From contig JANHCV010000008.1 of assembly GCA_025594325.1 (NCBI GenBank), forward strand, positions 434,001-498,000: a DNA stretch of 64,000 nt, written 5' to 3'. Made by a program: the position numbers and the translations under genes. The notes under the pieces were generated by a model, which saw nothing but the letters and a program-made list of their open reading frames with translations, ran no database searches and was not told the origin of the DNA. This DNA is from Blastocladiella emersonii ATCC 22665. Lineage: Eukaryota; Fungi; Blastocladiomycota. Shown here one piece after another: positions 9,746 through 45,928 of this stretch (its first letter is position 1; the number at the start of each line of letters is the position of its first letter).

Positions 9746-10688
9746 CCGTGGGCTTGCGCGCGGAGCCAGCAGGTTTGAGGACCAAGCCGAGGTGATGCGC
9801 GCGTACACGGTCCAAACGTGGGCAGGCAGTCCGTGCACAAGCCGCAGCCTTGATCTCGTGTCTACGCGTTGCGATTCCCGCCCGCGGGACGTGGTCAGCG
9901 CGCTTGAGCGAGAGAATGACCGGGTCGACGGCGGAAGCCTTTACAGGTCGACGGACCGTGGCGTGAAAGTCGCTGCGGTGAACGCAACGCACTCTTGACC
10001 GCGAGACGTGGCAAAGGCGCCGAGCCCGCTCGGAAGTGCACGAGCTTGGACGGTGAGAAGAGTTGCGGATTGTTCAAAAGTGATTCATGGAGGGCGAGGC
10101 AGGGAGCAAGAACCTGCGGGCGGGGTTGTGGCGGGCTTTCGATCGGGCGCCTCGCTTGCGGCGAAGCTGGTCGACGGAGCATCACCTGACCCATCACATG
10201 ATTTCTCGACGCGTCTCTCACCGTATGAACCCGGTCTGCTTCGGCCTCTCCGCTGTTTCGCTCCTTGAAAAAGCCAGGACAGCAAGTACGCAACGCGAAA
10301 TGCATCAAGTCTATTGCTCGCATCGCGTCCATAGCGTTACTTCGCCACCCTAAAAATGCATGGCCACAACTCACAATAGGTCCCAAACTAGAGCGATCCG
10401 CGACCCCGCGCACGCGTCCGATAGCGTCACCGCTTTGAACGCGACCGTCGCGACAAGAACACGCGTCGGAACGCGTCCCGGCTTGCGTCGACACCTCGCA
10501 GCGCTCGGCCCTCCCGCCCGGGTTCTCAGGGCGCAAGCGCGCAGCGGGCGGGAGAGAAGAGCGCGCGCGCAAAGGCTGCCGACGCGAGCCGACGCGGACG
10601 ACGCGCGTCAGATGTACGCGAACGAGTCGGAAGAATGGGCGCCGATGTGTTCGCGCGGTCACGGACCGTGAAAACGAATGGGACCCGA

Positions 10689-15889: not shown

Positions 15890-16260
15890 GGTGGTGGTTA
15901 TGTGCTTCGTTACGTTGCGTGACGTGGTTGGACTTGCTGGTCAGCAACGGAGCAACCCGGCTTGCGCGAGAGGGGTGGGAGAGAGTCGCGCCTCTGTGAT
16001 TCGAATCGCGTGGGGTCACGTGACCTGTTGCCGTGCATCCCAGACCCTTGATCGTTATCATGATCAGCTGTGTCCCGTACTCGTTAAATATCTGTTGCAT
16101 TTCTTGCGCCTTTTAAATGCCTTGGAAGGGCTTACAAGCGCGACGAGAAGCGTCGATCGATCACGTGCGGATGAGAGACGCGTTGATGGACATGGCAGCC
16201 ACTCCATCCCTTGCGCTCGACTCGTGAAAATGAGTACTGTGACCTCGCTGGTCCAAAAGC

Positions 16261-16750: not shown

Positions 16751-16908
16751 GGAACGACGTGGAACGGCGTGGGACGCTGCGTGAGATGCTGCGCGAGACG
16801 CGAGACGTGTCGATCAATCACATGGGCGTGCGTCATCCAGCGCCACTTGGCTCCCGAGACCGCGCTCTTGCTTCTCCGCTCCTTGAAGATACGACCCCTG
16901 CATGCGCA

Positions 16909-18351
16909 ATGACAGCGAATGAAAATGAACTTGCTGCAACGGAATCCGCAGATACTGTTCAGTCAGCTTACGCGGCGCCAGACTCTCCTGGCGAGGTCCC
17001 TTTCTTGCTGAACTCTGTGACCGTGCGACTGCAATACTTTCACGCGACTCTGTCCCATCGCCTCGCGTCCACACCGCCGCTGATGGGTCAGCAGGTTACC
17101 TTCCCAACGGGCCCATGGATGCCAGCCGCGACGGCGCCCACCATGCATCAATGGTCGCGATCCCCAGCGCGTGAGACCATCGAGGCGAGCCAAAAGCAAG
17201 CTTCTCGAACTCGCTTTCGCTCTCGCTCCCGCCCCCGTTCTACTTCCCGCAATCGATCTCGGTCGCGTCGCCGTCGCAAAGACAGCGCGTCCCCGCGGGC
17301 CAAGCGTGACATCTCGCCCCCGCGACCAAGCCGTCAGACCCGAGACTCAGCCCTTTCCCCAACTGTTTCGAACAACGAGCTCCGCCGCCGATTGGAACGC
17401 TGCCGCCCCTTGGCCAAATTCGATCCGTGCGGCCCCGAGCTTTCCTCACGGTTTCTCAGTCGCGAACTGGCCCGCTTCGTCGACGACGTTGCGTCCATGT
17501 GCGGTCCTGGGAACGTATTCCGCGGGCTCCTCCTCGCGCGTACCGAACTCGTCGTGCTGCCTGTCTACGCTTGCTACGCCATCTATTTGCGGCCCGACAT
17601 GAGCGATGCCGAGGCTCGCCGCGCGTTTCTCGACACTTTTGATCCGCAGCGCCAACCCGCCTGGCTCCGCGACTGGCGCGAGCTCGCACGTCGCCACCAC
17701 GAGTCGGTTGAGACGTTTGCCGAGCGGTTTCTTGACCTCGTTACAAACGCGATTCCGCGTAACCAAGTCGACCAGGTGCCGCACCTCAGTGCCCTGCTTT
17801 TGGACAAGCTTGGCCATGACTGTCGCGACATCGGGATTTCGACTGACGTTTACAACCGCCTCTGGAAATATCGCGCAACATTCACCTCGTTCGCGGAGCT
17901 TGCTCACAAGGCCTCGCGCGCTTCGAATATTCCCGCTCCCGCGCCGGCGGTGTTGCCGGCGCCGCCGCTGCGGGACTCGGACCCGCCGCCGTCAGAGTCT
18001 CTGGAGCAACTAAACTGTCCGCTTTGCACTGCTTTCAACAAGCAACCCCTCTATGTCCGTCGCCACCGGCTTGAGTCGTGCGTGCGCCTCCGCGACACCC
18101 AGCCATTCATTACTGCGCTCGAGTACTCTTTCTTCCTCAAAAAGATTGCAGTGCCGATCACGAAGACGCTGTCTGACGAGGCCCTGCGCGAGCTCTTGCG
18201 CGGGTATTGCGCCCGCTTCGAAGCGATGGCCCGCCCAGACCACCACGTGCTTGAGGCGATCATGTACCTTCGCGCAACTGAGCATCTTGAGCCGGGCACG
18301 CTGCAGTTTATTTGGAGGCAGATGCGAGCGATTTGGAGAGGGAAACGATGA
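16909..18351 (+). CDS. Gag-capsid-like protein 1 (480 aa): N-terminal helix, RS tract, Ty3/gypsy-type CA-like domain, CX2CX12HX4C knuckle, helical C-terminal domain
   Basis: AKFDPCGPELSSRFL...MSDAEARRAFLDTFDPQRQPAWLRDWRELARRHHESVETFAERFLDLV...LLDKL...TFTSFAELAHKA follows the retrotransposon-gag pattern. Knuckle CPLC-TAFNKQPLYVRR-H-RLES-C. AATAAA at 18375-18380 just after the stop; no pol downstream. Confidence 0.65.
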   Translation: MTANENELAATESADTVQSAYAAPDSPGEVPFLLNSVTVRLQYFHATLSHRLASTPPLMGQQVTFPTGPWMPAATAPTMHQWSRSPARETIEASQKQASRTRFRSRSRPRSTSRNRSRSRRRRKDSASPRAKRDISPPRPSRQTRDSALSPTVSNNELRRRLERCRPLAKFDPCGPELSSRFLSRELARFVDDVASMCGPGNVFRGLLLARTELVVLPVYACYAIYLRPDMSDAEARRAFLDTFDPQRQPAWLRDWRELARRHHESVETFAERFLDLVTNAIPRNQVDQVPHLSALLLDKLGHDCRDIGISTDVYNRLWKYRATFTSFAELAHKASRASNIPAPAPAVLPAPPLRDSDPPPSESLEQLNCPLCTAFNKQPLYVRRHRLESCVRLRDTQPFITALEYSFFLKKIAVPITKTLSDEALRELLRGYCARFEAMARPDHHVLEAIMYLRATEHLEPGTLQFIWRQMRAIWRGKR

Positions 18352-18529
18352 GTCTGGAACTCTTTATTGAATGAAATAAAAATACACATCGATGAAAGCA
18401 TGTTAGGGCGGCACCTCAAAGCGACTCCTTGAGCGAGGCTGCCCAGAGGCGGAACGCGACTGCGCTGCTCTTGCTCGCGCGCTCAATGAGAACGCGTCGA
18501 ACAGCGGGATCAGCGAGAACGGGGCCGTC

Positions 18530-20005
18530 CTACATGGCGCGAAGTAGGGCGACGCGCTGATCGGACTTTAAGTCGTAAACGATCCACCGGGCAAGTTCGG
18601 CTGACATGATCCACGGCTCGCCGCGCAGCGTTGTCACCTTTTGCGCAAACTCGGGGATCAGAGCGCCGTCGCGTTTCGAGACGATACACTCAATGACAAG
18701 CACCATGGTCAGCCCATGGCCGTTGACGCCGTACAGATGCGCGTCGCGCGGATAGCCGGCCATGTCAAAGTTGGAGGCAGGTGTAACGACGTCAAGGAGC
18801 TGTATGATCTGGTCGACTCCAAACGAGTCCAGGTGCAGAATCCTGTTCCAATAGTACCCAACGCGGTGTGCGTGAAGTGCATCGGTTTTGATGAGTCGCC
18901 GATTCTCAGCCATGGTACTGCAATGAAGGGCGTCCCATTCGGACTGTGAGGCGGGGACGGTGCGCGAAACCCACGGACCCTTTTCCCGCCACATCGACGG
19001 TGTCAACGGGCACCAAGGAAGCTGCTGCAACGCCGCGACAAGCACATCCGGCGTCCAGGAGCTGGAATTAAAAATCGGAAGACAATTGGCCACGACACTG
19101 GGCGACATCTCGACCCAACGGAGATCGCGAATAAACGTGTCCAACTTGTCAATCGAATCGATGGTGAGATCCGAGAGCGTACGTCCAAGTATGACGTCAG
19201 TGCTCGGGTAGCAACCGTGGCCCAAATTGATGATTTGCAACACCTGGCCAAACTGCCAGCGCATGTTAACCGCCCCCGCTTCATTGTGGCGAGGGAGGAG
19301 CTCCACCACGCGCCTGCGGACCAACTCGAGGCTGCTGACAACCTTGAACGGAGGCACCTTGTGTTCCGAAACCGTGGGCTCAAAGCTCACATGTACGCGA
19401 GCGAGCGCCAAAAGGTCCGCGGCAACGCAAGGTAGAGGAGCATTTGGCATTCCAAACGACTTGTGGCGAAGGGTGTTGAGCACGCTATAGAGGAGAGCAG
19501 AGCGGGAAAGGCCAGGTTTGCCAGCTGTGCTTGCACAATGCAGGATGAACTTGAGGCAAAACGCCCGACCCTGGAGCAGCACGCCGCGCGCTGCAAGCGC
19601 CCTGAATTTGCTCGAAAACAACGTCCCGACGTGCCTGAGAAGCAGGTTTTGAACGGTTTGAGGCGGCAAGTGCGGACAGTTGAAGACGTCCATCTCGCTG
19701 GCTTGATGTTGCAGGCAGTGGTCGAACTTGGTTTGAGAACTTTTGCTACTGTCGCTGGGCTCGGGAACTATATCTGACAACCCAAGCAGAAAGCAAAGTG
19801 CCGAAGGTGCGCGCGCGAGACAAGCTGCGTGCTGAAGATCTTCGTATTGCTCGTGAGTGATAGGCCACGGTCCGCCAGCCCAGTCAGAGAGTGCGTTCCA
19901 GCGGGGATCGGACTTGGCCACGTCCTGGCGAACCAACACACGGGCGACACTGAAAAAGTCGCACCCAAGGGCAAGCGAGTGGGTGGGGGTGCAGTTCGAC
20001 GTCAT
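18530..20005 (-). CDS. Orphan protein X (491 aa from MTSNC), function unknown
   Basis: Long uninterrupted ORF in a lower-GC block with a balanced globular composition. Converges on Gag-like 1; minus-strand AATAAA (TTTATT 18363-18368). Confidence 0.6.
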   Translation of the reverse strand: MTSNCTPTHSLALGCDFFSVARVLVRQDVAKSDPRWNALSDWAGGPWPITHEQYEDLQHAACLARAPSALCFLLGLSDIVPEPSDSSKSSQTKFDHCLQHQASEMDVFNCPHLPPQTVQNLLLRHVGTLFSSKFRALAARGVLLQGRAFCLKFILHCASTAGKPGLSRSALLYSVLNTLRHKSFGMPNAPLPCVAADLLALARVHVSFEPTVSEHKVPPFKVVSSLELVRRRVVELLPRHNEAGAVNMRWQFGQVLQIINLGHGCYPSTDVILGRTLSDLTIDSIDKLDTFIRDLRWVEMSPSVVANCLPIFNSSSWTPDVLVAALQQLPWCPLTPSMWREKGPWVSRTVPASQSEWDALHCSTMAENRRLIKTDALHAHRVGYYWNRILHLDSFGVDQIIQLLDVVTPASNFDMAGYPRDAHLYGVNGHGLTMVLVIECIVSKRDGALIPEFAQKVTTLRGEPWIMSAELARWIVYDLKSDQRVALLRAM

Positions 20006-20422
20006 TGCAGCCGCGGCAATAGTTTGGCATGAGCTGTCTAAACTGGTCCAGATGGCCGCGAGAAAGTGCAAAGGCTGGCTGAAGCCAAGGGCGGGCGGAC
20101 CAAAGCGAGAGCTCGCTGACAGCCGAGCGACAAGTTGCGCGAAGGGCGAGGGCCGCTTGCACATCGAGGTGCTTTGCAATCATGGCCTGCAGTTCAAGTA
20201 CACGTGACCGCGTTGCGCCACAGTCACCGGACGCGTGCGACCCCGCCCGCGTCACGCGCGTCACGCGCACCGCGCCGATCTCCTTTGTCATCGCCGCGGA
20301 CCGCCTCACCTCACCGAGCGACGCGTCGGCCCGCTCACATCGGACGACGCGCCTCCGCATCCCCTCTCTCTCTTGTTCCTTTGACCAGTTGCTAGTATTA
20401 GCCACCACATACAGCCTGTTGT

Positions 20423-20496
20423 CCTCTCGTGAACCTCCTCACCGTCTCCTCTTGTGAACCTCTTCACCGTCCCCTCTTGTGAACCTCTTCTCCGCC
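20423..20496. repeat. 25-bp tandem repeat, 3 copies
   Basis: CCTCTYGTGAACCTCYTCACCGTCY at 20423, 20448 and 20473 (third copy slightly diverged). Confidence 0.9.
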
Positions 20497-20784
20497 AAGA
20501 TCGCACGTCCATCGTGCCGGGCTTCCCCCCAGCCGAGTACGCTTCAACTCCTGCAGCTCTTGCGGCAAGTTAAATAGCATAACGGTTTCGTTCATGGTGT
20601 GTTTGCATCGCGGGATCTCTGGTCGTGGGAGCGGCGGCTCGCGCTCACACCCAAACAGCGTTTTGAATCCGACGCCGCCACGTGCACGTCAGGAAGTGGC
20701 GCAGCGCGACCCTGGTCCAGTTCGTTCTCGCTGCGTTGCTGCAAGCAGCCCTAGCTCATAATCGATTCGCGCCGGCTACTATAT

Positions 20785-22212
20785 TCACTCCTTACGCGGT
20801 CCGAGCCCAAACTTTCTGTACATATCCGTGACGCCATTCCAAACTGGGACAAGGTGCGAGCTGAGCATCTGCTCAGGCATGTCCGCGAGCGCCGCGAGGA
20901 ACATGCTTGCGTAGCGCAGCGCCTCGGCGTCCTTCATCTCGGGCAGCGTGGCCGACACCTGGATCGTTCGCGCCAAGTACTCGCGGGAGAGGTCCACGAG
21001 GACGTTGTACGACGTGCTGTACGTCCTACTCGTAGGCGGGAACGTGTCAAGCAGGCGCAAGCCGGAGATGATGGAGCGCTTGAGCCGGTCAATGTCGCGG
21101 GCCCGCGAGCATTTCACAAGTGCGTGTCCGAGGGCATCGTGGCGCAACGGCGGGAACTTGTTGCAATAAATGCAAGGCGGCCGCGCGACGGACGTCGGAT
21201 CGGCTCGATACCGGGTGCTTGAAGCGGATCGGTTCCTGGATGAAGAGCGCGAGCGAGTTCGGGAGCGAGAGCGAGTCCGGGAGCGAGAGCGAGTCCGGGA
21301 GCGAGAGCGAGTCCGGGAGCGAGAGCGAGTTCGGGAGCGAGAGCGAGTTCGGGGGCGCCGGATCGACTTCTTGAGACGCGGATTAGATTCAGTCGCGGCC
21401 GAATTGGAAATCAGCGGGTCACCAAGGCGGTTCTTGATGTTAATGATCGACATGTGCGGCATATCAACGAGCGCGACAATTTCGGGGTACCTCAACGCGG
21501 GCAGATACGCAAGTTTGTCGAGGTAGATTCGCTTGATGTGGGATAGTGCGAGCATGCCCAATGTGACCTCGGATTGCCGCAGCATGCGCCATGCTCGATT
21601 GTGAAAGTTGTTCAACGAGGACCGAGGGCTTGGCATCAGATCAACCCATTTCTGAGCCCAAAGCGGGCGCTGCTCGGCATGGACTGCGCGAGTGAACGCC
21701 CGCCTCGTTGACGTGTCAGAAAACTTGGGGTCGACCAAAAACGTGCACGCCAGGTAGTTGTCCCGCGACATGCAGTCCCGCGCAAGAAGCACCAGCTCGG
21801 CGAGAGGCTGTGCAGGCGCGAGCGCGTGCAGTGCATCGAGGAAGCCGCTTGGAGAGTCAATAGACACGCGCCCGTCGGGCGCGGGGAGACGGAAAAGTGG
21901 AGCGTGATGGCGATTCCGGTCATCAAGCGAGAGAGCGGACGGCGGCGGCGGCACTGAGCGGGCGACTTCGCGCACACGAGGGTCTGTAAGCGAAGCCGAT
22001 TCGCCGGGGCCTTCTGCAGCTGCCAGCCGCGTCCGGAGTGCATCACCGATTGTCTGAAGTCGGCTTTCGAGTCGCTGATACAATGCGACTGAGCACAGGA
22101 CTCGCTCCGCTGGATCGGCATGCGAGCTTGGCGGGTGATCGCCGCCCGCGAAATTCATACGCGGGTCGCGCGGGGTAGGGTCTAACGTGTTGCATAAAGT
22201 CATTTGATTCAT
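20785..22212 (-). CDS. Gag-capsid-like protein 2 (start ATG 22212 or 22158)
   Basis: LLARDCMSRDNYLACTFLVDPKFSDTSTRRAFTRAVHAEQRPLWAQKWVDL..SSLNNFHNR..YLDKL aligns with Gag-like 1 (LLAR..Y.AC..P..SD...RRAF..QR.P.W...W.L..S...F..R..LDKL). Knuckle CIYC-NKFPPLRHDALG-H-ALVK-C; RS tract. Confidence 0.7.
   Translation of the reverse strand: MNQMTLCNTLDPTPRDPRMNFAGGDHPPSSHADPAERVLCSVALYQRLESRLQTIGDALRTRLAAAEGPGESASLTDPRVREVARSVPPPPSALSLDDRNRHHAPLFRLPAPDGRVSIDSPSGFLDALHALAPAQPLAELVLLARDCMSRDNYLACTFLVDPKFSDTSTRRAFTRAVHAEQRPLWAQKWVDLMPSPRSSLNNFHNRAWRMLRQSEVTLGMLALSHIKRIYLDKLAYLPALRYPEIVALVDMPHMSIINIKNRLGDPLISNSAATESNPRLKKSIRRPRTRSRSRTRSRSRTRSRSRTRSRSRTRSRSRTRSRSSSRNRSASSTRYRADPTSVARPPCIYCNKFPPLRHDALGHALVKCSRARDIDRLKRSIISGLRLLDTFPPTSRTYSTSYNVLVDLSREYLARTIQVSATLPEMKDAEALRYASMFLAALADMPEQMLSSHLVPVWNGVTDMYRKFGLGPRKE
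21245..21352. repeat. Coding 18-bp tandem repeat, 6 copies, encoding (RTRSRS)n in Gag-like 2
   Basis: GAGCGAGAGCGAGTYCGG at 21245, 21263, 21281, 21299, 21317 and 21335. Confidence 0.95.
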
Positions 22213-22270
22213 TGGGGGTATGGTTGTGAGCGAGGGGAGTGGTAACGCCGACCCCCCTTCGACCTGTCCT

Positions 22271-22318
22271 TGCGGGGCTTTGCCCAAGCTATAGTGCGGG
22301 GCTTTGCCCAAGCTATAG
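22271..22318. repeat. Perfect 24-bp tandem duplication upstream of Gag-like 2
   Basis: TGCGGGGCTTTGCCCAAGCTATAG twice (22271-22294, 22295-22318). Confidence 0.95.
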
Positions 22319-24441
22319 GCGCTGCGATTTCGTTTTGACGCTCGTCACGCGACCCGATCACGTTGCTCCCAATGACATCACTCCCCGTGTCGCGTTGCGC
22401 CACTTCGCTTCGGCTCTCGCTTCCGCTCCGCTCCCCTCCCGCATGCTCCCCTCAATCGATGAAGCTGATTTACTCCATGCAATGAATCTCATAAATTATG
22501 AAATCGACGGCGGGCTGGTCCTGTCCCACCTCGGCGCTTTTGGGTGGCGCTCGCACGGCGACTGGCTGTGCTCGACTTGGCCGTTGACTTGAGTTTTCCG
22601 CTGGCACCGCTTTTGCACTCTGCTCTTGCTATTGCACAAGTGCTGCTTAGGCGAGCTCGCCGAGTGGAGCAGCGTATTGTGGGATGCTTTCATGGTACCT
22701 GGGCCTTTCAGTGCCTTGTTTCCCGTGGTGACCCAGGCTCAAAGGCGATGCTCTTTGTGTTCTAGTTCTTCCCCTTGTGTCGAAAAACTCGTTTTTCTTG
22801 ACCGCCGTTGCCGCCACTATACCGCCGTTGTGCCCGCCCAGCGAACCCTCGCGTCCTGTTCACTTGCCAAGGGACGTCGTGCCAAGCGAGGGTTGTGCAA
22901 CCAAGTCGCTTAAACCCTCGCGACGAGCGGTTACGCGGTATCTCTGCTTCGGCGGCCTGGGATGCGAACTTCATCACGAGCGAAGCGCACATCTGGCTTT
23001 GCTCCAGCGCAATCACGCGCGGCTCATCTGCTGCGCTGCTGGCCGCTTCTTACCTCGACCCCTGCTACCTGCACAGCGGCGAAACGTGTTATCGATTCAC
23101 TAAGAACTCCTTGTCAAGGTCTACCGAGCAACTGGAGGCGAGAGAAAGTCGGCTGAGCAAACCGTCGCAACCGCGGTTGGAACCGTTGATGCTAGCTTTC
23201 CACCAACGGGCGTGCGTCAGTACAATTTTGACAATCCTCACGTTCTCCGGGGTTTCGCACGACGATGAGGATTGCTCCGTCAGCAACTTTCATCAGGCGA
23301 ACAAGAGCGAGACAAAGCGCTCCGCTCATGCGCGCATCAAGACGTACACGATATCCATCCATCTGCGCTAGAGTGTCTCGTGTCGCTGTCAACGACATCC
23401 CGTGGCACCGTAACTCGCATCGACCTTTCGCGATCCTTCCACCATAGATCCGCTTCATCCGAGCTCTGTTGTTCCCTGCCCAAGGAGGCGAGCTCACGCG
23501 AGGTCTCGAGCTGGCTCAATGCGTGCGACGCGAAGGGAATCATCGTTGGTCGCGTTCTTAGCGGAAAATCGACGCGTTAGTCGAGATCGAGTCTTCGCGT
23601 GCATTCGTTGTGCATGATACATTCTGTTAGTTCACGATCGCCGACTGCTTTATTTTCGGCTCATTCAAAACACCAGCATGCTCTTACGAGCGAGTGGCTC
23701 GCCTTGACGCGTCTGTCACAAATCCGATCTCAGTTGCCTTGAGCGCGCTGGAACTACGCGCTACGTGCGCGTATGCTGCATTGGGGCGATGTTGAGAGTA
23801 ATCGGCGCCCACAATCAAGTCGCGCTAGCGCTCGATCAAAGCCACCATCACTCGAGCCAGTTTGTGTTTGTGCGCGCTTGATCGCAACTCGCTGCTCAAG
23901 GAGTCACTCCCGCAACTTGAACAACGATCCGTTCAGCGACCTTCAGCTATCTCCGCCACGTCCGTAGTCGACTTGATCCACCTCAAGAGCAGGAAGACGC
24001 ACAAAAGCGCGAAGAAGGCGTGTTGCGACGGCCCCAACGCGTGGATCTGACGCGTCGCGACGCTTTCTTTGAAGCCCCTTTGAGTGCTGCGAGTCCGAAG
24101 CATGATATCAGTCCGCGCTACATCTGAAGCGATTTCAGTGTCCCTTAGTTCATAAATCATGCAGTTCCTTGCATCACGCGTCAATCGCGCGTCTGTAGTG
24201 CCAGGTGATCGCAGCGAGAGGGCACTTGGGCAAAGCCCCGCACAGTTGACACCCGAACGAAGTGAGTGGTGGAGGTACTGGCAATTGAAGTCTCCAGATT
24301 GCGTCACGTGTTCTCGAAACGCGTCTCGCACCTCCCGCCTTCGCGGCACAACGCGCCAGTGCGAGTTCCTCGCGCACGCCGCGCGAGTTCCACGATTATC
24401 ACGGTTGCCATCCAGTTGCACAACCAAGTTTATTCGCTCCG

Positions 24442-25297
24442 CTACCCAAGCCCGTCACTGTGGTGGTGGTAGTACTTTCGCGTAACGCCCTTCCACACTG
24501 GCTCAATATGCGAGCGATACATGTCGCACGCCATGTTCACGAGCGCAGCAAGGAGCAGGATCACGTAGCGCAGCGCTTCTATATCCATCACCGCGGTCAT
24601 CATGGTCGTTGCTTGGTCCGTGCGCTGCGAGTACTTGCTGGATAGCGCGGCGAGAGTCGTGAACGACTCGCTTCACGTTCTGCGCTCGGGTGGGAAGGTA
24701 TCCAGAAGCCGCAAACCAACGAGTATTGAGTGGACAAAGCACTTGACGGCTACCTTGACGCTGGTGGCAATGTCAAACAACGAGCCGCGCGACTTGCACT
24801 TGGGCGGAAACGTGTTGGGCGCTGCCTGACAAGCACACGTCGTCGAAGATGGAGCAGAGGAAGCGCGCGCAGTCGCTGAGCTGGAAACAAGTAAGGTCGG
24901 TGTTTGGCCCAACGCGCAGCGGCGGGAACTCGACGGGGAGGCGGAAGAGCGGCGCGCGAGTGCGGATCAGCTCCTCGATGCAATGTGATGGCGATGGTGT
25001 AAGCGAAGAAAGCGGTGCCGGAGTAGGACGAGGCGGCGAGCGGCTCAGGCGATCCGCATCGGTTGCGTGGCCCACCACGCACGCAGCCAACCTCGATTCA
25101 ATCCCGACGCGGATCGTGTGTAGACGAGTCTCGAGCCTCTGGAACAACAAGTCGTCGTCCGAGTGTAGGGGCGTCCGCGCTGGATCGTCCAGCGGGGCGG
25201 CGGCCAGGACCAGCGCTGGCGGCGGGCCGCGCGAAGCTGCTTCGCTCGCCGTTGAAGGCTCAATACATGGTAGATTGCACGTAGTCATGAGTTTCAT
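24442..25297 (-). pseudogene. Gag-capsid-like copy 3: internally deleted, frameshifted, with an in-frame stop
   Basis: LFQRLETRLHTIRVGIESRLAA and APLFRLP match the copy 2 N-terminus. After a junction near 24840 it resumes as NTFPP...SILVGLRLLDTFPPERRT*SESF...DIEALRYVILLLAALVNMACDMYRSHIEPVWKGVT, matching the copy 2 C-terminus (SIISGLRLLDTFPPTSRTYSTSY...DAEALRYASMFLAALADMPEQMLSSHLVPVWNGVT). TGA at 24673-24675. Confidence 0.8.
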
Positions 25298-25501: not shown

Positions 25502-27298
25502 TCAAATCGACACGGGCCGGTACACGACCGTGGTGACATGCTTCTTGCGGTACCGCGCCGTGATCGCCACCGCCATCACCCCATCCCGGATACTGCACGC
25601 GTAGAGGTGGTTGAGGACGACGTGCGGCGGGACGGGCACGCTCTCCTCGTCGGGCCGCGCTGCGTTGAGGAGCACCTTGGTCAGGTGCGCGGGGAGCGCG
25701 GGCGGCTCGACCACGGGCTCGCCCGTGGGGCCCAGCGTCACGACGAACCCCGTCGGCGTGCCGGTCCCGTTGCTCGCGGCCGCGGCGGCGGAGGCGGAAG
25801 AGGCGGTGGGCGGGTGCGACGCGAGACGGAGCAGCGCCGAGGTTGAGGGCACCTGCGTCGAGTACTCGCCCGGCGGGGACTCGCCGAGCGGCGGCAGCGG
25901 CGCCTGGTTCGCGGACGACGGGGGCGGGGTACTGGTGCCGAGCGGTGGCGGGGACGCGGACGCGGACGGCGACGCAGAGGTGCGTCCGTTCCCCGCGAGC
26001 GCCGATGCGCGCGGCGGGAGCGGGTTCGGGACACTAGCCGAGAACGGTGCCGCGGCCGGGACCGCCGCCGAGGTCGCAGGTGCCACTGGTTGGGCGACGG
26101 GCACCGGCCGCGCGGCCGCCGCGACCGCTGCCCCCACGAACGCAGCCGCGGGGACCGACGATGCAGGGACCGTCTGGGCCCTCGCGCGCCCACCCGCACT
26201 CGCCACCTCGCCCACAGGCGACGGCGCGAGCGGCGGCATCTGGACCTCGACAAAATTGACGAGGTTCCCGTCCTCGTCCTGCGCCGTGGGCAGCTGGCGG
26301 CAGCACCGCCACTCGTCGTCGACGATGAACTTGAGGCGGTAGACGCCGGGCGCGAGGGCGAGGGTGACGGCAAAAGTCGGCCGTTTCTGGTTGTCGTCGT
26401 TGCCGCGGCGGAGCGGTACCTTGCTGCGCCACTGGTTGAAGGTGCCCGTGATGTACACGGCCGACGGGACGTCCGACGGCGGGCCCGTCGCGTGCGGGTC
26501 GGCGAGGGTGTCGACGACGTACCGGATCGTGGTCGGGACCGTTGCGGGGGCGGTGGTGGCGGGGGCGGGAGTCGGCGCGACGCGTGGGGACTTGGCGGCG
26601 GGCGCGGGCAGCGGCTCGAGACCCTGCATCTGCTGCTGCTGCTCCTTCTGCTTGCGAATCGCGGCCGAGAGCGCCGACTCGCCCGACGCGCCAGCCGTCG
26701 GGGATAGGGGGGACGGCAGCCGCATATTCGCCGCCACCGCGAGCCCGTCGACGGACGGCAGTTGTGGCGGCGACAGCATGTCCGGGTACTCGCTCGGCTC
26801 TCCGGGCGTTGCGCCACCCGCCGTCGCGGCGTCGGGCGGGAGCGCGAGCAGGGGCATCCCCGTAGCCGGATCGAATGCGCCCGCCGGTCCCCCAGCGGCG
26901 AGATCGAGGTCCGGCATCATCATCCCCGTGGCTGCGGCCCCGCCGGCGTGCGTCGTGGTCGACGCGTACGATAGCGGCGACCCGACGAACGGCGACGCGC
27001 CCATGAGCCGCTGCGCGGCGGCGGCTGCCGCGGGCATCGGGATCGGCGCGGGGCTCGCGGGCTCGTAGTACCCAGGATTCGGGATTCGCGGCGACGGCAG
27101 CGCGATGGGCTGGGTCGGTGGCGGGCGGCCGTTGGCGAGGTTGAGCGGGGCGGGGCGCGGGGACGCGCGGACCGCGGGCGAGGCGCTGGCGGACGGGTGG
27201 CGGCGCGGCGAGAGCGGGCGGGAGTCGCCAGTGGTGGAGGGAGGGAGCGGCGAGGTGCCGTCGTCGAGTCCCATGGGCGAGGATGGCGAGTTGCCCAT
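25502..27298 (-). CDS. AMPK/SNF1 beta subunit (Sip2/Gal83 family)
   Basis: N-myristoylation start MGNSPS (27298); CBM VYITGTFNQWRSKVPL...LAPGVYRLKFIVDDEWR...DGNLVNFVEV; C-terminal ASC domain PPALPAHLTKVLLN...PPHVVLNHLYACSIRDGVMAVAITARYRKKHVTTVVYRP. Confidence 0.93.
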   Translation of the reverse strand: MGNSPSSPMGLDDGTSPLPPSTTGDSRPLSPRRHPSASASPAVRASPRPAPLNLANGRPPPTQPIALPSPRIPNPGYYEPASPAPIPMPAAAAAAQRLMGASPFVGSPLSYASTTTHAGGAAATGMMMPDLDLAAGGPAGAFDPATGMPLLALPPDAATAGGATPGEPSEYPDMLSPPQLPSVDGLAVAANMRLPSPLSPTAGASGESALSAAIRKQKEQQQQMQGLEPLPAPAAKSPRVAPTPAPATTAPATVPTTIRYVVDTLADPHATGPPSDVPSAVYITGTFNQWRSKVPLRRGNDDNQKRPTFAVTLALAPGVYRLKFIVDDEWRCCRQLPTAQDEDGNLVNFVEVQMPPLAPSPVGEVASAGGRARAQTVPASSVPAAAFVGAAVAAAARPVPVAQPVAPATSAAVPAAAPFSASVPNPLPPRASALAGNGRTSASPSASASPPPLGTSTPPPSSANQAPLPPLGESPPGEYSTQVPSTSALLRLASHPPTASSASAAAAASNGTGTPTGFVVTLGPTGEPVVEPPALPAHLTKVLLNAARPDEESVPVPPHVVLNHLYACSIRDGVMAVAITARYRKKHVTTVVYRPVSI

Positions 27299-27702
27299 GC
27301 TCGCGGCGGCGGCGGTAGCGGGTGGGGGTGGTGGGGGAGCGAGCGGTGGCGCGTCGGCGGTTACGGGAGGCGGTGGGAACGCGGCAGACGGGCCGCTGGG
27401 TGATGGCGAGGACAGGGACGAGGTTGGTGGAGACGCCAGGGCGGACACTCACGCGGAGGGGAGGGAGGGAGGGAGGTGGGAGCGGGAGGCGTCGCCGCGC
27501 GTCGTTAATGTCGCGGGAGAAGGCCGCAAAGATCGGTCGGCGGTGAATCAAGTGCGTTGCATGGGGTTGCCGGTGCGGCAGCGTCGAGGTGCGCGAGTAT
27601 TACATGCGCTTTGGGAGGGGGCGGTCGTTCGAGGTCGGCGCCGACTTTTCGGAACTCGTCATCGTCGCGTCACGTCCCCCCTCTCTCCCCTTACATTACG
27701 CT

Positions 27703-31534: not shown

Positions 31535-33241
31535 TCAAGCGCTTGCGCCTCGCGAAAGCGCAATCGGGTCAGCTCTTGTTAAAAGTGCGGTAGCGCTCGC
31601 CAAGGTGCTCTCGGGGAGAACGCGATGGAGGATGTAGACCGTGAGGACAAAGGCGATCGCTTTCAGCATCATGACGCCAAACGAATGCGCATCGGACCCG
31701 AAAAACGTGGACCCGAAAGGCGAAACATCGCTGACAACGTTCCCGCTCAAATCGATTTCGGTGACCGTCGATGGGAGAATGTCCAGCAGCTCGGTCGTTT
31801 GCTCCTCGCTGAGACCGCAGTGTGCGAGCTCGATACTCGTGAGTGTCGCAGGCATGTGGAGCGCGAGGAGCTCCGCGGACTCGACCGTCAGCGGCGTGCC
31901 GTTGAGAACGAGTGTGATAACACGCGGCGGTAGACACGGCGCGAGAACAACGACGGCATCAGAGCTGCACTTGTTGAACTCCAAGCAAAGGTGCGCGAGC
32001 GAGTGGGGAAGCACGGGCGCAAGCGCAGTAATGCCATCGTCTCCCAGTTCGCATCGTCCCAGGTTGAGATGCGTGAGGTTCTGTGGCATGTGAGCAGCAA
32101 GTCGCTGGCCCGCGTGTGTCCCAATCCGCGTGTCGTAAAAGTTGAGCTCGCGAAGGGAGGCCGGAAGTTGCTCAAACAGTATCTCGATTGCCTCATCGGT
32201 AAACTTGGCGTGGGCAAGGTTTAGACGCGACAGTCCGTGCAAAATTCGTTGCGCGAACGCCGTCGCTGTCGCGCAAGTCCAAAACCCGCCTTCCGCGTCG
32301 AGCTTCTCGAGGCTGAGCGGCAAGTTGCGCACAAATTCGAGAATACACTCGGACTCCTTGAAGGCCGTGCCGAAATCGGACCACCACGAGAGCTTGAGCT
32401 CCTTGAGCGACGCTGGAAGGTGAGCCAGGAACTGCAACGAGTCCGGCTCGCCGAGGATTTCGTCTGCCAGATGAAGCCGCTCAATTGAGTCGGGAAGCCA
32501 TGACCCAATGATACTCGTAGTTGCGCGCGGGATCCAGCGGCCGCTCAGCGAGAGCTCCTTGAGCGTGCTGGGAAGGCCCATGGCGGCGATGACGGGAAGT
32601 GCGACGAAGGAGCCGGCAAAACCGGCCGACGTGACGGCCTGCTTTGTACTCGAAAAAGCGGTGCGAAGGCGAGCGGCGCCCCAGCTCGTGATGCGCATGC
32701 TCTCGATTGACAAGGTAGTGATTTTTCCCGACGCGACTTTGGCGGCAGACCGAGCGGCGACAATTTCCCCGGCTGGCCGACCCTTGAGCTCATCCCGTGA
32801 GTCCAGCGCAGCTTGCGTCAAAGCATACCAGTCGGCTGACAGGTCGAACAGCACGTTGAGCTCGGGTTGATGGAACCGTTTCATGAACTTGAGCCGGCCC
32901 GAATCGCGCCACCACTCTACGGCCGCGATTCGGCCAAGTTTGAAGGCCTTGCTGATGGTCGGCGCGGGGCGCTGGAGAACAAGCGGGCGGCCCGAGGCCT
33001 TCAACATAGACAGGACGCAAAGGAGCCCGGCCTCGGTGGCGCGCTACAAGCTTATGGACTGAACAAGCCGTGATTCGATGGCGCGGTAGACTTGAGGCGC
33101 CGTCGCACGCGGGAGGACGCGAGAATAGCGCCCGAGAGCTGCGAGATCGGCGGGGTCCGTTGCGAGCACGGCCTCCACCAGAATCTGCTCAATGATGGAG
33201 TTGATAGCCAAGCAAGAAGTGTTCATGACGGGCGAGTTCAT
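31535..33241 (-). pseudogene. LRR family copy A (F-box-like N-terminus, WWxxSG unit, RNI-like LRRs) with one in-frame TAG
   Basis: ORFs 33044..33241 and 31535..33007 share one frame: QSISL*RATEAGLLCVLSMLKASGR versus copy B SAISLEHATKLSLVSALRLWKASGR. LRRs LPASLRELNFYDTRIG, LTHLNLGRCELGDDG, LPSTVTEIDLSGN. Confidence 0.8.
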
Positions 33242-33455
33242 GGGTAGTGCATGATACGCGAATACATTGAAAATGTGCGTGGGGAGAGCGAGAACCGCTC
33301 GTGAGGCGACACGTTGCTTTCACCTCGCTTCCTGTCCCTGATCAGCACTTGCCGCTCCCGCAACGCATGAACCGCTTTATGACTTGATGCAACGGGCGTG
33401 CAAGCATGCGCCGTGAACACTTTCACTCGATCGTCACGATCTTCCAGTGGGACAG

Positions 33456-33662
33456 CTATCGAGGTGGCGACTTCCGCTTGGGAGCACGGTAGACTGCGGG
33501 GGCGGATGCCCGAGGGAGGACGCGGGCGTAGTGCGCGAGCGCGGCGAGGTCCGTCCTCTCAGTCGCGTGCACGGCGTAGACGAGAATCTGCTCGATGACC
33601 GAGTTGACCTTGAGGCAAGAGTCATTCATGGTTGCTTGATTCATGGGTGACTCATGATACAT
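33456..33662 (-). pseudogene. 5'-only fragment of the LRR family
   Basis: MNDSCLKVNSVIEQILVYAVHATERTDLAALAHYARVLPRASAPAVYRA matches the N-termini of copies A and B, then diverges and stops. Confidence 0.8.
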
Positions 33663-33841
33663 GAATGCATTCAATGAATGCGTTGCCGAGGTACGGGAGG
33701 GAGAACCGATGGCGAAGACATCACCTGAACCATCACGCCGCCGTAGCGTCGGTTTGCGGCATGCGAACAAACAGTTGCGGTCGCGGGCAGGCCGTGAACC
33801 GATACAGGTACTCTCAGGTAGTCGAACCAAATATATTCAAA

Positions 33842-35440
33842 TCATTCGCAATAGTATTGGACCTCGCAGCCCGGGAATTTGGCCTCAAAATAATCGTGTG
33901 CCTCAAGGCCCTTCTGGCCTCCGCCGTAACGTGAGACGATAATGCGCTTGAGGTTGCCAAGTTTGAACATATCCGCCGCGTAAAACGTTTCCTTGTGAAT
34001 TGGGTTGCCGCGCAGATTGACTTCGGCAACTTCAGGCGGGAGGCGCGAGAGCAGCGTGATCGCAAGACTGTCGGACAAGTAGCTGTCCTCAAGGTTGATG
34101 CGGATCAGCGACGCGGGGAGATGGTGCGCAAGTTGCTTGATGGCTTCGACCGTCAAGGGCGTGCCGCCGAGATTGAGCTCGATCAAGTTAGGAGGAAGGC
34201 GAGGCCCTAGCGCGGCGATGATGTCCGAGTTGCACAGGTTGTATTCCAAGTTGAGAGTTGTAAGAGAGGCCGGAAGAACATTGGCGAGGGCAGTCAAATT
34301 CTCGCTGCCCAAGCTGCAGCGCCCGAAGTTAAGCTCGCGAAGTGTGGGTGGGAGATGCGTGAGAAGGACCTTGAATCCACCGGGGGTAAAGCTTGCACCG
34401 GCCAGATTGAGACGGATCAAACTTGGTAAGACGCGTTGGGCAAACGTGGTTGCGATTGCAGTGGACCAGAGACCACCCTTCGCGTTGAAAATCTTGAGGG
34501 TACCCGGGAGGTAGTGCACGAACTTGAGAATACAATTTGACTCTTGTTTTGAAGTCCAGCCAAACTTGGGCCGCCAAGCAAGTTTGATTTCCTTGAGCGA
34601 CGCGGGAAGATGGGCCAGGAATTGCAGCGAGTCCGGCTCGCCGTACAAGTCCTCAGAGAGGTGAAGCCGCTCGATCGAGTCGGGAAGCCACGGGCCAGTG
34701 ATAAAAGTCGTTGGGCGTGGGATCCATCGACCGCTCAGGTCGAGCTCCTTGAGTGTGGCGGGGAGACCCATCGCAACAATGTCGGAAAGCGCGACGAATG
34801 ACTTGGAAAAGCTGGCCGCAGTGACTTTCTGGTTCGGACTGGCAAACGCTGCGCGGAGGCGAGCGGCGCCCCACTCGGTCATGCGCATGCCGTCCATGGA
34901 CAGGGCAGTCAATTTGCCCGAAGCGATGTCGGCGGCGGACTGAGCGGCAACCATGTCGCCCGCCGGCCGACCTTTGAGTTGGTCAAGCGGGTCGAGCGCG
35001 GCCTGCTTCGTGGCATACCATTTGGGCGATTGGTCGAACAGGACGTTGAGCTCGGGCTGCTGGAACCGCTGCGTAAACTTGATCCGACCCGAGTCGCTCC
35101 ACCACCCCACGGCCGCAAGCTGACCTGACGCATATGCTTCCCGAAGCAGCCTTTCGGGGTCCTGGAGCAGGAGCGGGCGGCCCGAGGCCTTCCACAGACG
35201 CAACGCGCTCACTAGACTGAGTTTGGTGGCATGTTCGAGAGAAATCGCTGAAAGTACGCGATTCTCCACGGCGCGGTAGACGGCCGGGGCGGATGCGCGT
35301 GGGAGAACTCGAGCGTAGTGCCCAAGTGTGGCGATGCTGTCGGCCGCGTGCACGTTGGTCGCGTGCACGGTGTCGACGAGAATCCGCTCGAGAATCGATG
35401 GGACGTTTAAGCAAGGAGTATTCATGGTTCCGTGATGCAT
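33842..35440 (-). CDS. LRR family copy B (apparently intact, intronless)
   Basis: Uninterrupted ORF: MNTPCLNVPSILERIL..., AAVGWWSDSGR, LPATLKELDLSGRW, LPPTLRELNFGRCSLG, LPASLTTLNLEYN, LPPEVAEVNLRGNPI. Confidence 0.8.
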   Translation of the reverse strand: MHHGTMNTPCLNVPSILERILVDTVHATNVHAADSIATLGHYARVLPRASAPAVYRAVENRVLSAISLEHATKLSLVSALRLWKASGRPLLLQDPERLLREAYASGQLAAVGWWSDSGRIKFTQRFQQPELNVLFDQSPKWYATKQAALDPLDQLKGRPAGDMVAAQSAADIASGKLTALSMDGMRMTEWGAARLRAAFASPNQKVTAASFSKSFVALSDIVAMGLPATLKELDLSGRWIPRPTTFITGPWLPDSIERLHLSEDLYGEPDSLQFLAHLPASLKEIKLAWRPKFGWTSKQESNCILKFVHYLPGTLKIFNAKGGLWSTAIATTFAQRVLPSLIRLNLAGASFTPGGFKVLLTHLPPTLRELNFGRCSLGSENLTALANVLPASLTTLNLEYNLCNSDIIAALGPRLPPNLIELNLGGTPLTVEAIKQLAHHLPASLIRINLEDSYLSDSLAITLLSRLPPEVAEVNLRGNPIHKETFYAADMFKLGNLKRIIVSRYGGGQKGLEAHDYFEAKFPGCEVQYYCE

Positions 35441-35858
35441 GGGTAGTGTGTAATACGTTGTTTCATTCAGGTTCCGCGTGGGAAGAGCGAGGACCGCGTG
35501 CGAGGCGAACGCGTCGCTTTGAGGCCGGGTCGCGGCCCTGATCGCGTCCCACTCAACACCACTGGCACAAGACCGCACTCAGGAGCGTTATCACTTTATG
35601 CGACGAATTTTTCCATGCGTTCTGCGAGCATCCTGATCGGCGCGGTTACTATTGCCCCGGGTAGCACAGGATTCCAAGCGCGCCACGCGTACAACCTCAG
35701 TCACGCTCGCGTCGACAGTCTGAACTTGCCAGCTGGGGCAACTCTGAGGTTGATTTAGTGAGGGTAATTGATTCTAGAGACGCGGTACTAGCGTACAAAA
35801 TTCTCACTTGACCTCCGGAACTGGGCTCAAGTAATCATGTTTCATATCCAGTTATTAC

Positions 35859-37648
35859 CTAGCCTGCTCTTCGCGGCCAACCAAAACCTCGCAGTCGCCA
35901 GCGAGGTCCCCAGTAGAACTCGTTGAAAGCGCCGGCCAGGGACGTACCGCAACCTCTGAGGTCTAGCGACTTGATCTCCCCACGACAACAGAGTTCAAGC
36001 ATCTCGACAAGTCCAGCTACAGAAAATCGGAACCCGCGAAACGCGACTATGGTCATTGGACACGGGCAGGCGGCCAGGCTTTGAAGCGCGGGTTTGTTGT
36101 TGAGGCCGCACGAGGAAAGGTCCAGGTCGGTCAGGGTTTCGGGCAGGTGGTGCGCGAGCGCGCACGGCGAGTTGCCGCGCAGCAGGAGCGACGAGAGGTT
36201 CAGTAGATGGAGATCTTGAGGGAGATGCGGGATCAGAAGGCCAGCTGCGGCGTCACCAAACTTGTTCGAGCCGAGGTCCAGGTGACCCAGCATTGACGGC
36301 AGCACGGGTGCAGGTTCGGCGAGGCACTGGTCGTTGAGCTCGCAGCGAGCCAGGCCGAGATACGTCAGATTCGGAGTGAAGTTGGCCGCCAGCAGCGCGA
36401 CTGCATTCAAAGAAAGCTTGGGTGCCGTTCAAATCAAGCCGCTGAAGCGCTCTTGGGAAGCACGAAAGAATCGCGTCACCCACGTCGTGCGATTTGTACC
36501 AGTCATCATCGGCGAGTGAGCAGTTGCACAGTGTCAAGCTTTTGAGGTGACGCGGCATGCGTTCCACCATGATCTGGGCGTTCTCGCGCTTCCACCGAAC
36601 ATTGGCGATGGAGAGCTCAGTCAGGTTGGGCGGGATGCCGAGGGTCAAGTTTCGCGCGCTATCCCAGCCGAGCGGTGTAAAGGCACTTCCACGGCTGTGA
36701 GGATGAAATGTGTAGGACCGCAGCGAGGAGGGGAGGAAGCGCAGGAACTCCATCTCCCACGTGTGCGCCGAACGAGCGCGGAGTTCAAGCTGCTCGAGCG
36801 AATCGGGGAGCCACGGGCCCGGCTGCCGCTCCTTGAACCACGAAGAAAATGAGTCGGACGCATCGAGCCGCTTGAGCGTGTTCGGGAGCCCCATGCGAGC
36901 GAAAATAGCGTACGGCACACCGGATCTAACGAAGCTGGCCGAGATCACTGCCTGGCGCGGGCTGGCGAACGCTTCGCGGAGGCGGTCGGCGCCCCACTCA
37001 GTGATGCGCATTGATTCGATTGCTACATGTGGAAGCTTGCCCGAGGCAATCGCGGGTGCGATGCGCGCAGCGTACACGTCGCCGGGCGCGCGGCCCTTGA
37101 GCTCGTGGTCCTGGATTCGGGGCGAGCGTCGTGTGAGTTTGGCCAAGTTTTTTTTTCGGGTTAGGGCGGAGCGAGCGTACCGAGCCGAGTTCCGCCTGCT
37201 GGACGCGATACCACGCGGGATGCAGGTCGAGCAGCACGTTGATATCCTGGTAGCAAGCCGAGTCAAACGGTGCCGCGCCGCGTAGCAAACCCGTGTCGCG
37301 CCACCACTCAACGACACGAATACTACCTCCTGTGTACGCGGCAGTCACCGCTTCACGAAGGTCCTTGACGGGCGCGATTCGGCCGGACGCCATCCAGAAC
37401 TCGAGCGCGGAGAGGCGGCCCTGCGCGCTCGCAATGATAATCAACACAGTTGACGCGACGTGCTGCTCGATCGCGTGGAGCACGGCGGGAGCATTCGCCC
37501 GAGGAAGAACGCAGGCGTAGTGCTTGAGGCGAGGGTACTCCAAGTCATCGCACACGTCGGTCGCGAGCACGGCGTAGATCAGGATCCGCTCAATAATCGA
37601 GTGGACGTTCAAGCAAGCGGGGCTCATAGTCAAGCAAGAAGCATCCAT
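35859..37648 (-). pseudogene. LRR family copy C: one intron (37111-37180) and a 1-nt frameshift near 36418
   Basis: Splicing GTACGC..CTAAC..CCAG joins QAELGS|DHELKGR, collinear with A/B. Removing one G in CAA[G]CTTTCT restores GTQLSLNAVALLAANF and joins ORF 36253..37317 to 35859..36410. Confidence 0.75.
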
Positions 37649-37830
37649 GGCGACCTATTACATTTGTATCCCATACAAGCTGCGTTGCGTTGCGGGAGCG
37701 AGGACCGTCCGCGAGCGCCGTCGCCGTCTTGACCGCCCGCCCTCCCTAGCCCGCTGACCCCTCACCGCCTCCCCACCCCCTGCAACGCATCAACCACCGC
37801 CGCGACTCCGTGCAACGGCCCCGCGCCACC

Positions 37831-43200: not shown

Positions 43201-43535
43201 TCGTCGTCGACTCGGTCGTCACGCACCCGTTCGAGTTCGACTTCTACATCCAGTCGCACCTCAGCCAGCAGGGGCTCGCGAAACCGACCCGGTACAGCGT
43301 GCTCGTTGACGAGAACAAGTTCGCGCCCAACCACCTCGCCGAACTCTCGTACCGCCTCTGCTTCCTCTACCCGCGCGGGTCGCGGTCCGTGTCCATGGTC
43401 CCGCCCGCGTTCTACGCCCACGTGTGTGCGGCGCGCGCTAAGGCGCATGTGATTGACGGCGAGCGGAACGGGCAGCGGTTTTTCGCGCTGTCCATGGTCA
43501 AGCCCGAGCTTGAGAAGGCGATGTATTTCATGTGA
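40224..43535 (+). CDS. AGO: Eukaryotic Argonaute (N, PAZ, MID, PIWI) with an intact DEDH tetrad; 129-nt in-frame intron 40912-41040
   Basis: PIM|ANAF after splicing; YQYD; PAZ TVDQYFYQEYNRRLEFPNLPC...YLPLELC; MID GVTSQCV...NLCLKVNVKLPGGTN; PIWI FMGADVTHP (D), RAEII (E), FYRDGISEGQF (D), QKRHHTRFF, PPAFYAH (H). AATAAA 43562-43567. Confidence 0.97.
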   Translation: MSSNNANSGWDRPLRPLAAPAPAPVAAPAPTSPGGASTSDGEDDGESDSSPGDTSNGEEEDDEEEEGAVDGAAAVPLVAAPPTSAVAPAVAAPALVAPAVAPAVASEQFVAAAPNGGEFAIAAPVPTPAAAFVAEAAIPDVPMAEAVPAAAADMLMSEAATPAAAPAADLTPTAPTGEPSSDGSNPADAVPAAGTASYKRREAAKIFETVMQVPRRPGLCTSGDAIPIMGMLFLAVVVVFPAGHVATLYAPASPAICPPTRANPSFPMSARVANAFAVRMRDIDGFLYQYDFRVEPEAPGLRMRALFEKWRDMHFSSLVADRATVCTFEGKRLMYTSGPLTLVPGEERRFEIALPGGNRRGGVAGGRRGFERVFTVKVRLNSRLPLRDLHEYLHGTVSREHSVFAYTSSIDVIFRQAATTLLSPKGRVLFDHRNKTSSGTGMEVVPGYTQAIRTAEGSVTLILDVTSSLFFEAKTLVDLLRIAFGRNGLNSLAPGEIDQAERVLRGFAVFPNYQREQMRRPFTIHGITRLPANATYFKLNGRDLTVDQYFYQEYNRRLEFPNLPCVIVQVGAPGRGRGGDSSSSGGGPPVKIYLPLELCTLAPNQKVTRPLGRIDIKSFKPSALRPLERAAQIERAVRLVYDPAPALTSAFGLAPEFKMLNIEARQLPHPRLLFHPSSRAPTAIPVDGRWSMDNHKVYNGVTLARWAVLPFVPCDPAQISRFIARWAGMMRDMGIHVPNQTPPILPPADPNAADIETALQHAYLQAGRETEHPDLLVFILPNKGYQLYHTIKRVCDTVLGVTSQCVTLQVAQQMRNTHMENLCLKVNVKLPGGTNVRVDPALMPCVAEIPTIFMGADVTHPAQEIRSPSIASVVGSMDAFASQYASVARIQPIRAEIILDMGSMVLELLQKFYASTGTKPQRIIFYRDGISEGQFTDVIRTEVAAIRKACKALDPVYAPKLTFIIVQKRHHTRFFPRPGAPVDLRTGNLLPGLVVDSVVTHPFEFDFYIQSHLSQQGLAKPTRYSVLVDENKFAPNHLAELSYRLCFLYPRGSRSVSMVPPAFYAHVCAARAKAHVIDGERNGQRFFALSMVKPELEKAMYFM

Positions 43536-45797: not shown

Positions 45798-45818
45798 GCG
45801 AGACGTGTCGATCAATCA
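45798..45818 (+). promoter_or_regulatory. Putative upstream element GCGAGACGYGTCGATCAATCA shared by BTB copies 2 and 3 and Gag-like 1
   Basis: Exact 21-mer at 45798-45818 and 16800-16820; one mismatch at 48662-48682; 20/23 variant at 16145-16167. The three main copies lie about 110-135 bp upstream of a plus-strand ATG. Confidence 0.5.
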
Positions 45819-45928
45819 TGTGAGTGTCATTTGATCCCGCGCCACACGTCCAAGTCGCGAAGCTCGGCTCGCTGAGCGCGGGTGGAGCTAGCCTCGCTCC
45901 CCCTAACCTTCTTTCAATGCCTGCAAAC

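Follow-up and report, generated by a model that had tools for sequence, protein, structure and literature searches.

The 64 kb stretch of the Blastocladiella emersonii ATCC 22665 genome analyzed here (contig JANHCV010000008.1, positions 434,001 to 498,000; hereafter the window) contains three homologous genes, here called gag-like, within positions 16909-25297. A preliminary description of this DNA had recognized all three, two as intact and one as deleted, and this is borne out: copies 1 and 2 are open and align with each other (24% identity over a core of 114 amino acids (aa), E 2e-6, with a weaker alignment of the C-terminal parts), while copy 3 lacks the core. Copy 3 does retain its N- and C-terminal parts, as had been reported, and these match their counterparts in copy 2 at E 2e-7 and at 49% identity and E 6e-21, respectively, when its pieces are searched separately. 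Because it has a large internal deletion that removed the core and the linker, a frame change and two in-frame stops, copy 3 is a pseudogene. The start codon of copy 1 is backed by an N-terminal match to a second B. emersonii locus (L003:2717-2968), and the AATAAA hexamer previously placed about 24 nucleotides (nt) after its stop codon is present. Overlooked, however, was a gene of another family, here called mid, which lies between copies 1 and 2 in what had been described as a cluster of three genes. Coordinates of all features are given in Table 1.

From the N terminus onward, the gag-like proteins consist of an amphipathic helix, a disordered basic tract rich in Arg and Ser, a core of helices that spans about 130-150 aa, a zinc motif of the C2HC type and a C-terminal domain with four helices. 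A single-sequence AlphaFold model of copy 1 has a predicted local distance difference test score (pLDDT) of 42, and residues 165-480 modelled with a six-row alignment reach 74. In the copy 1 model, a core of about ten helices (pLDDT 78-90) is followed by a low-confidence linker and then by the zinc motif, with the four helices of the C-terminal domain scoring 77-90. The N-terminal helix motif, core and C-terminal helices that had been assigned to both intact copies thus find support in alignment and model, but the Cys/His motif is not the retroviral-type knuckle that it had been taken for. Its spacing, CX2CX12HX4C, is invariant in all 11 aligned members, and the zf-CCHC Pfam model has no match in the family. 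The C-terminal part has no Pfam or PDB match.

Table 1. Features of the window and of three other B. emersonii loci (L001-L003) that carry gag-like genes
Feature	Locus	Position	Strand	Remarks
23-nt motif	Window	16802-16824	+	85 nt upstream of copy 1 ATG
Copy 1, intact gag-like gene	Window	16909-18351	+	480 aa; open reading frame; core profile match 183 bits
Copy 1 N-terminal helix motif	Window	17026-17067	+	
Copy 1 Arg/Ser-rich tract	Window	17152-17352	+	
Copy 1 helical core	Window	17413-17880	+	
Copy 1 C2HC zinc motif	Window	18016-18081	+	
Copy 1 C-terminal helical domain	Window	18082-18348	+	
AATAAA hexamer	Window	18375-18380	+	23 nt past copy 1 stop
mid gene	Window	18530-20438	-	Belongs to another lineage-specific family; tail to tail with copy 1
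25-nt tandem repeat	Window	20422-20494		About 3 copies; between mid and copy 2
Copy 2, intact gag-like gene	Window	20785-22212	-	475 aa counted from first ATG; core profile match 176 bits
Copy 2 C-terminal helical domain	Window	20788-21108	-	
Copy 2 C2HC zinc motif	Window	21109-21174	-	
Copy 2 Arg/Ser-rich tract	Window	21166-21411	-	
18-nt tandem repeat	Window	21245-21357		6.3 copies, 95% matches; encodes copy 2 Arg/Ser/Thr run
Copy 2 core	Window	21448-21906	-	
Copy 2 N-terminal helix motif	Window	22021-22074	-	
24-nt perfect tandem repeat	Window	22271-22318		2 copies; directly upstream of copy 2 ATG
23-nt motif, degenerate	Window	24305-24327	-	Just downstream of copy 3
Copy 3, pseudogene	Window	24433-25297	-	N- and C-terminal parts only
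AMPK-beta gene	Window	25502-27448		Single long reading frame; at one flank of gag-like cluster
LRR_6/FNIP-repeat genes	Window	31535-37650	-	Tandem array, period about 2.2 kb; in lower-GC island
Argonaute/Piwi gene	Window	40224-43535	+	Complete, single reading frame (ArgoN, PAZ, Mid, Piwi)
fam44 array	Window	43.8-52 kb	+	About 4 tandem units, each with 23-nt motif in front
23-nt motif, other site	Window	10195-10217	-	
23-nt motif, other sites	Window	16145-16167, 45800-45822, 47882-47904, 48664-48686, 50673-50695	+	
Lower-GC islands	Window	16-25 kb, 30-37 kb, 46-52 kb		With multi-copy families
23-nt motif	L001	14903-14925	+	
fam44 homologue	L001	15043-16559	+	3 kb from gag-like cluster
Weak integrase-core (rve) reading frame	L002	850-2016	-	
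Helicase, Herpes_ori_bp-like	L002	3927-6917	+	996 aa
23-nt motif	L002	9284-9306	-	
23-nt motif	L002	11023-11045	+	
mid-like gene	L002	11160-12993	-	
mid-like gene	L003	2-1408	+	
23-nt motif	L003	3049-3071, 5032-5054	-	
mid-like gene	L003	3171-5054	-	
mid-like gene	L003	17982-19490	+	
PIF1-like fragment	L003	20736-21826	+	Near B. emersonii gag-like clusters

When copy 1 was searched exhaustively with HMMER against 1.84 billion representative proteins, four matches were obtained (E 1e-20 to 9e-7, 28-33% identity). All are hypothetical proteins of B. emersonii (ATCC 22665), encoded on a single 1.8 Mb contig, and no gag-pol polyprotein is among them. Word-index protein searches with copy 1, the family alignment and mid returned no match (for the first two, Arg/Ser words probably swamped the candidates), and single-protein searches of metagenome and viral contigs returned no close relatives. 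Three B. emersonii loci around the relatives, L001, L002 and L003, were compared, with profile hidden Markov models (hmmbuild, jackhmmer) serving solely to locate family copies. The core profile finds 18 core-bearing open reading frames (ORFs) in the window and these loci, at least 16 of them outside the window; consecutive runs on a single strand comprise seven ORFs in L003 and five in L001. Most copies have the core, then the zinc motif, then a tail of about 90-110 aa past the motif. Core identity between copies is 12-66% (median 24%); this divergence and the tandem arrangement indicate old paralogues, not young transposon copies. Most family members in L001-L003 carry no annotation. The NCBI model KAI9175498.1 (P0001, 556 aa, three core repeats; L003 9392-13455, plus strand) looks like a fusion of three distinct ORFs that lie in tandem. 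The family goes unmentioned in the searched passages of the B. emersonii genome paper, which do indicate that expressed sequence tags exist for this species (PMC9730499).

The genes had been described as lacking any nearby protease, reverse transcriptase, RNase H, integrase or long terminal repeat (LTR) pair, and six-frame scans and repeat searches of the window agree. No model for any of these four enzymes has a match among the ORFs of 15.5-25.8 kb or the rest of the window, and the window contains no LTR-sized direct repeats. In L001-L003, where no reverse transcriptase was seen, the direct repeats represent coding similarity of tandem genes and short tandem repeats, without LTR pairs. A reading of the genes as parts of an LTR element was rejected, as no LTR-like repeats occur in the window or in the three loci. 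In about 130 kb around the 18 copies, none was seen to have flanking LTRs or a linked pol, the arrangement that the preliminary description had regarded as the sign of ordinary retrotransposons. The sole pol candidate is the weak rve ORF of L002, which scores under the cut-off (E 1.4e-4) and lies about 6 kb from a gag-like copy. Other non-family genes in these loci encode a chitin synthase, an HMG-box protein, the 996-aa helicase and a PIF1-like fragment; the rve ORF, the helicase and the PIF1-like fragment may be remains of DNA elements.

These data bear on whether the copies are decayed non-autonomous or solo-gag retrotransposons instead of functional host genes. Such an origin would suit a multi-copy family in which copy 3 and one L001 copy (split across two frames) are broken, in which GC content at third codon positions (GC3) is below that of housekeeping genes, and some of whose B. 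emersonii members have transposable element-type ORFs (the weak rve ORF, helicases) nearby. It is nonetheless quite improbable. Copies 1, 2 and most B. emersonii copies remain open across 260-520 codons in DNA of about 60% GC, and the Cys/His residues are invariant; in this respect they resemble co-opted gag genes, the frames having been kept open under constraint without pol or LTRs, neither of which was found in the four loci. A crude Nei-Gojobori estimate for L003 copies gives dN/dS below 1 (0.28-0.50, at a dS of 0.8-2.4 that is near saturation). No two cores are more than 66% identical, the copies form tandem arrays and not dispersed insertions, and the upstream motif described below is common to unrelated gene families.

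The core had been described as resembling a Gag capsid. What can be said in favor of this is a set of faint, sub-threshold matches to Retrotrans_gag and PNMA, which do not establish Gag ancestry. The Pfam model Retrotrans_gag (PF03732), with a gathering score of 24.1 bits, matches three of 15 cores in one register at 15-17 bits: copy 1 (E 0.006-0.013, 16-17 bits) and two others at E 0.022. The PNMA Pfam model matches one of the 15, also below threshold (E 0.025). In the Foldseek comparison with known capsid folds that had been suggested, carried out with the whole model of pLDDT 74, PNMA2 and Gag are among the matches, none of them significant. The PNMA2 capsid (8rb3, 8uyo) ranks 23 and 43 in PDB, with probabilities of 0.30 and 0.20 and E values of about 2-3; non-significant and sub-threshold as it is, this is the highest probability among the PDB matches listed. 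Two retroviral Gag models rank 14 and 32 in BFVD, again without significance, and are among the higher probabilities in that viral set. The order of core followed by basic tract or zinc motif parallels the succession of capsid (CA) and nucleocapsid (NC) in Gag. Because this order fits and because Gag-derived families stand at or near the top of the weak Pfam and Foldseek matches, Gag ancestry is plausible.

Several observations weigh against a host-resident family of such ancestry. Every Gag sequence match falls under threshold, the best at 17.2 bits, and the closest relative of copy 1 has no Gag match. PDB profile searches with the core and with the copy 1 subfamily, as well as PDB sequence searches, gave no capsid. 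An unrelated model, His_Phos_1, matches three close L003 paralogues over the same short stretch about as well (E 0.01-0.09). Foldseek with the whole three-part copy 1 model returned nothing at E <= 0.001 in PDB or BFVD, the matches having E values of about 1-3 and probabilities of 0.13-0.38. The zinc motif spacing differs from that of the retroviral knuckle, CX2CX4HX4C. In addition, the GC3 of the gag-like genes is 0.68-0.70, compared to 0.88-0.92 in housekeeping genes, which a foreign or mobile origin would fit too. A His_Phos_1 identity was itself rejected, as the region is predicted to be all-helical and the match covers only about 40-60 residues.

It may be, then, that these genes form a lineage-specific orphan family without Gag ancestry, all-helical and with a C2HC finger, that arose or diverged within the Blastocladiales and resembles Gag by chance over about 40-50 residues. 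The absence of any Gag match at the curated threshold, the equal fit of His_Phos_1, the lack of a significant Foldseek match, a zinc spacing closer to a classical finger variant than to a knuckle, and the absence of a gag-pol polyprotein from the exhaustive search would all be accommodated by this explanation, which has a real, if lesser, chance of being correct. However, chance would also have had to rank Retrotrans_gag, PNMA, the PNMA2 capsid and retroviral Gag models highest or nearly so among the weak matches in Pfam and two Foldseek libraries, to align three Retrotrans_gag matches in one register, and to produce a domain order that fits CA followed by NC.

On this evidence, the gag-like genes are a real, lineage-restricted, host-like and fast-evolving family. 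Host-like behavior is indicated by the tandem arrays, the divergent and mostly open paralogues, the invariant zinc ligands, the shared upstream motif and the housekeeping neighbors, with Notchless-like and AMPK-beta genes flanking the cluster in the window. The family is plausibly an ancient co-opted gag, although its Gag ancestry is unproven, with the chances standing close to even. Taken as a whole, the explanation we tentatively prefer, at a little short of an even chance, is a host-resident, Blastocladiella-restricted, tandemly amplified family most likely descended from the gag of an LTR retrotransposon and long parted from pol and LTRs. Of the "undescribed domesticated Gag family" initially proposed, the lack of pol and LTRs, the undescribed status, the zoosporic fungal host and the host-like character all stand, but descent from Gag is not established.

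The mid gene belongs to a second lineage-specific family. In the window copy, the first ~115 codons are in a different frame than the rest, attributable to a single frame change or to a short intron that was not predicted, and the two pieces were searched separately. In L002 and L003, mid homologues are immediate neighbors of gag-like genes. The mid/gag-like pair occurs tail to tail in three places, and the pair formed by copy 1 and mid has a counterpart in L003 that is 38-41% identical and carries the same motif upstream. A weak N-terminal match to F-box or F-box-like models is present at one position in three of the five mid copies scanned, all three from the B. emersonii loci, at E 5e-4 to 0.03 and 14-20 bits, where the cut-offs are 20.5 and 24.3 bits. 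Neither a Pfam match (F-box included) nor a PDB match was obtained for the window copy. In being lineage-specific, multi-copy and clustered, and in the weak N-terminal F-box of those three copies, the mid family resembles expanded F-box families; unlike them, all its matches are under the cut-offs, the window copy has none, and the C-terminal ~450 aa match nothing known.

A 23-nt motif, GAGACGYGTCGnnnnATCAYRTG, consisting of an ACGCGT-like box and then a CAYRTG box, occurs eight times in the window, versus 0.19 expected. In the window and in L001-L003, it is found about 50-250 nt upstream of genes from several lineage-specific families; in the latter loci, it precedes the closest copy 1 relative, another gag-like gene, a mid-like gene and a homologue of a further family, fam44. 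This motif is probably a shared promoter element. A weaker form is present about 240 nt upstream of an Arp-like housekeeping gene. The tandem fam44 genes have no Pfam match. The degenerate site next to copy 3 points into 2 kb without a recognizable gene. Positions 22350-24300 of the window, about 2 kb, contain no recognizable ORF, Pfam match or paralogue, and a homology search of 22.3-24.45 kb gave no match.

The window is GC-rich (56-74% across 2 kb bins) and intron-poor, and single long ORFs encode ordinary eukaryotic genes: Argonaute, AMPK-beta, an actin-related protein, Dus, ORC5, UPF3, TAF7 and VPS11. A gene encoding a flagellar SAXO protein is present as well. The zoosporic fungus that had been supposed as the source fits with this gene, with the intron-poor housekeeping genes and with the restriction of all relatives to B. 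emersonii. Exact look-ups gave no record for five proteins of the window, and searches for tRNA genes in the window and for Rfam families gave none. The Argonaute gene is 15 kb away from the gag-like cluster. GC3 is 0.59-0.71 in the gag-like, mid, fam44 and leucine-rich repeat (LRR)/FNIP families, versus 0.88-0.92 in housekeeping genes, and the window thus contains two compositional classes of genes. The low-GC3 islands might be explained if the gag-like genes were cargo of a larger integrated foreign element, giant virus-like or some other DNA element. The islands do carry paralogous families, including the FNIP/LRR genes, and helicase and integrase-like ORFs are present in the B. emersonii loci. 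However, the islands are just 5-9 kb in length and interleaved with housekeeping genes, six-frame scans show no viral hallmark domain, no close relatives were found in viral contigs, and the weaker form of the upstream motif is also found in front of the Arp-like housekeeping gene. An origin of this kind is very improbable.

A possible mode of action can be sketched from the domain layout and the gene neighborhood. The gag-like proteins would self-associate through their helical parts, and the basic tract and zinc motif would bind nucleic acid. They may act with the neighboring F-box-like proteins in RNA handling or against retroelements. The family would turn over by duplication and loss, with copy 3 representing one such loss. 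A more elaborate and unlikely version is that, in this early-diverging fungus, a capsid-derived tandem family is co-clustered and, via the 23-nt motif, co-regulated with F-box adaptors, the two families together providing a defense against retroelements or viruses, one as capsid mimic and the other as its partner, a ubiquitin ligase adaptor. Fv1 and Ty1 p22 are Gag-derived restriction factors; the analogy with them would extend only to the idea of a pol-less, capsid-like protein interfering with related elements.

Compared to Gag of the Ty3/gypsy type, the family is similar in the matches of its helical core (three members, one register) and in the basic tract and Cys/His zinc motif that come after the core, in the manner of CA-NC. 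It differs in its low scores and zinc spacing, in its additional four-helix C-terminal domain and Arg/Ser tract, and in having no pol, LTR or frameshift into pol. The animal PNMA, Arc and RTL/PEG10 genes are likewise pol-less host genes, some of them multi-copy, and the PNMA model and PNMA2 capsid are among the best weak matches. However, none of these matches is significant (E 0.025; Foldseek E of about 2-3), the lineage is a different one in which co-option would have been independent, and the Blastocladiella genes form tandem arrays of up to seven and are linked to F-box-like genes. Among fungi, three gag co-options, Crtg12-14, have been reported, all of them single-copy genes of Dikarya whose relation to the gag of Copia or Bel-Pao elements is clear (Wang and Han 2021, PMC8321522). 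If the Blastocladiella family is gag-derived, it would share with these its status as a set of pol-less fungal host genes; it differs in being multi-copy, in belonging to the Blastocladiomycota and in being related to Gag faintly if at all. A 2024 screen for co-option in fungi uses a kingdom tree without Blastocladiomycota, and passages of it describe no such family (PMC10799480).

If Gag ancestry is not confirmed, the genes constitute an ordinary fast-evolving orphan family, mainly of use for improving the annotation of B. emersonii. If it is confirmed, zoosporic fungi would have their first co-opted gag family, and the known reach of gag co-option would go deep into the fungal tree. The family would also stand apart by its tandem arrays, since the three co-options so far reported from fungi are all single-copy (Wang and Han 2021). 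The linkage to F-box-like genes would then provide a new context in which to ask for what purposes capsid-derived proteins are recruited.

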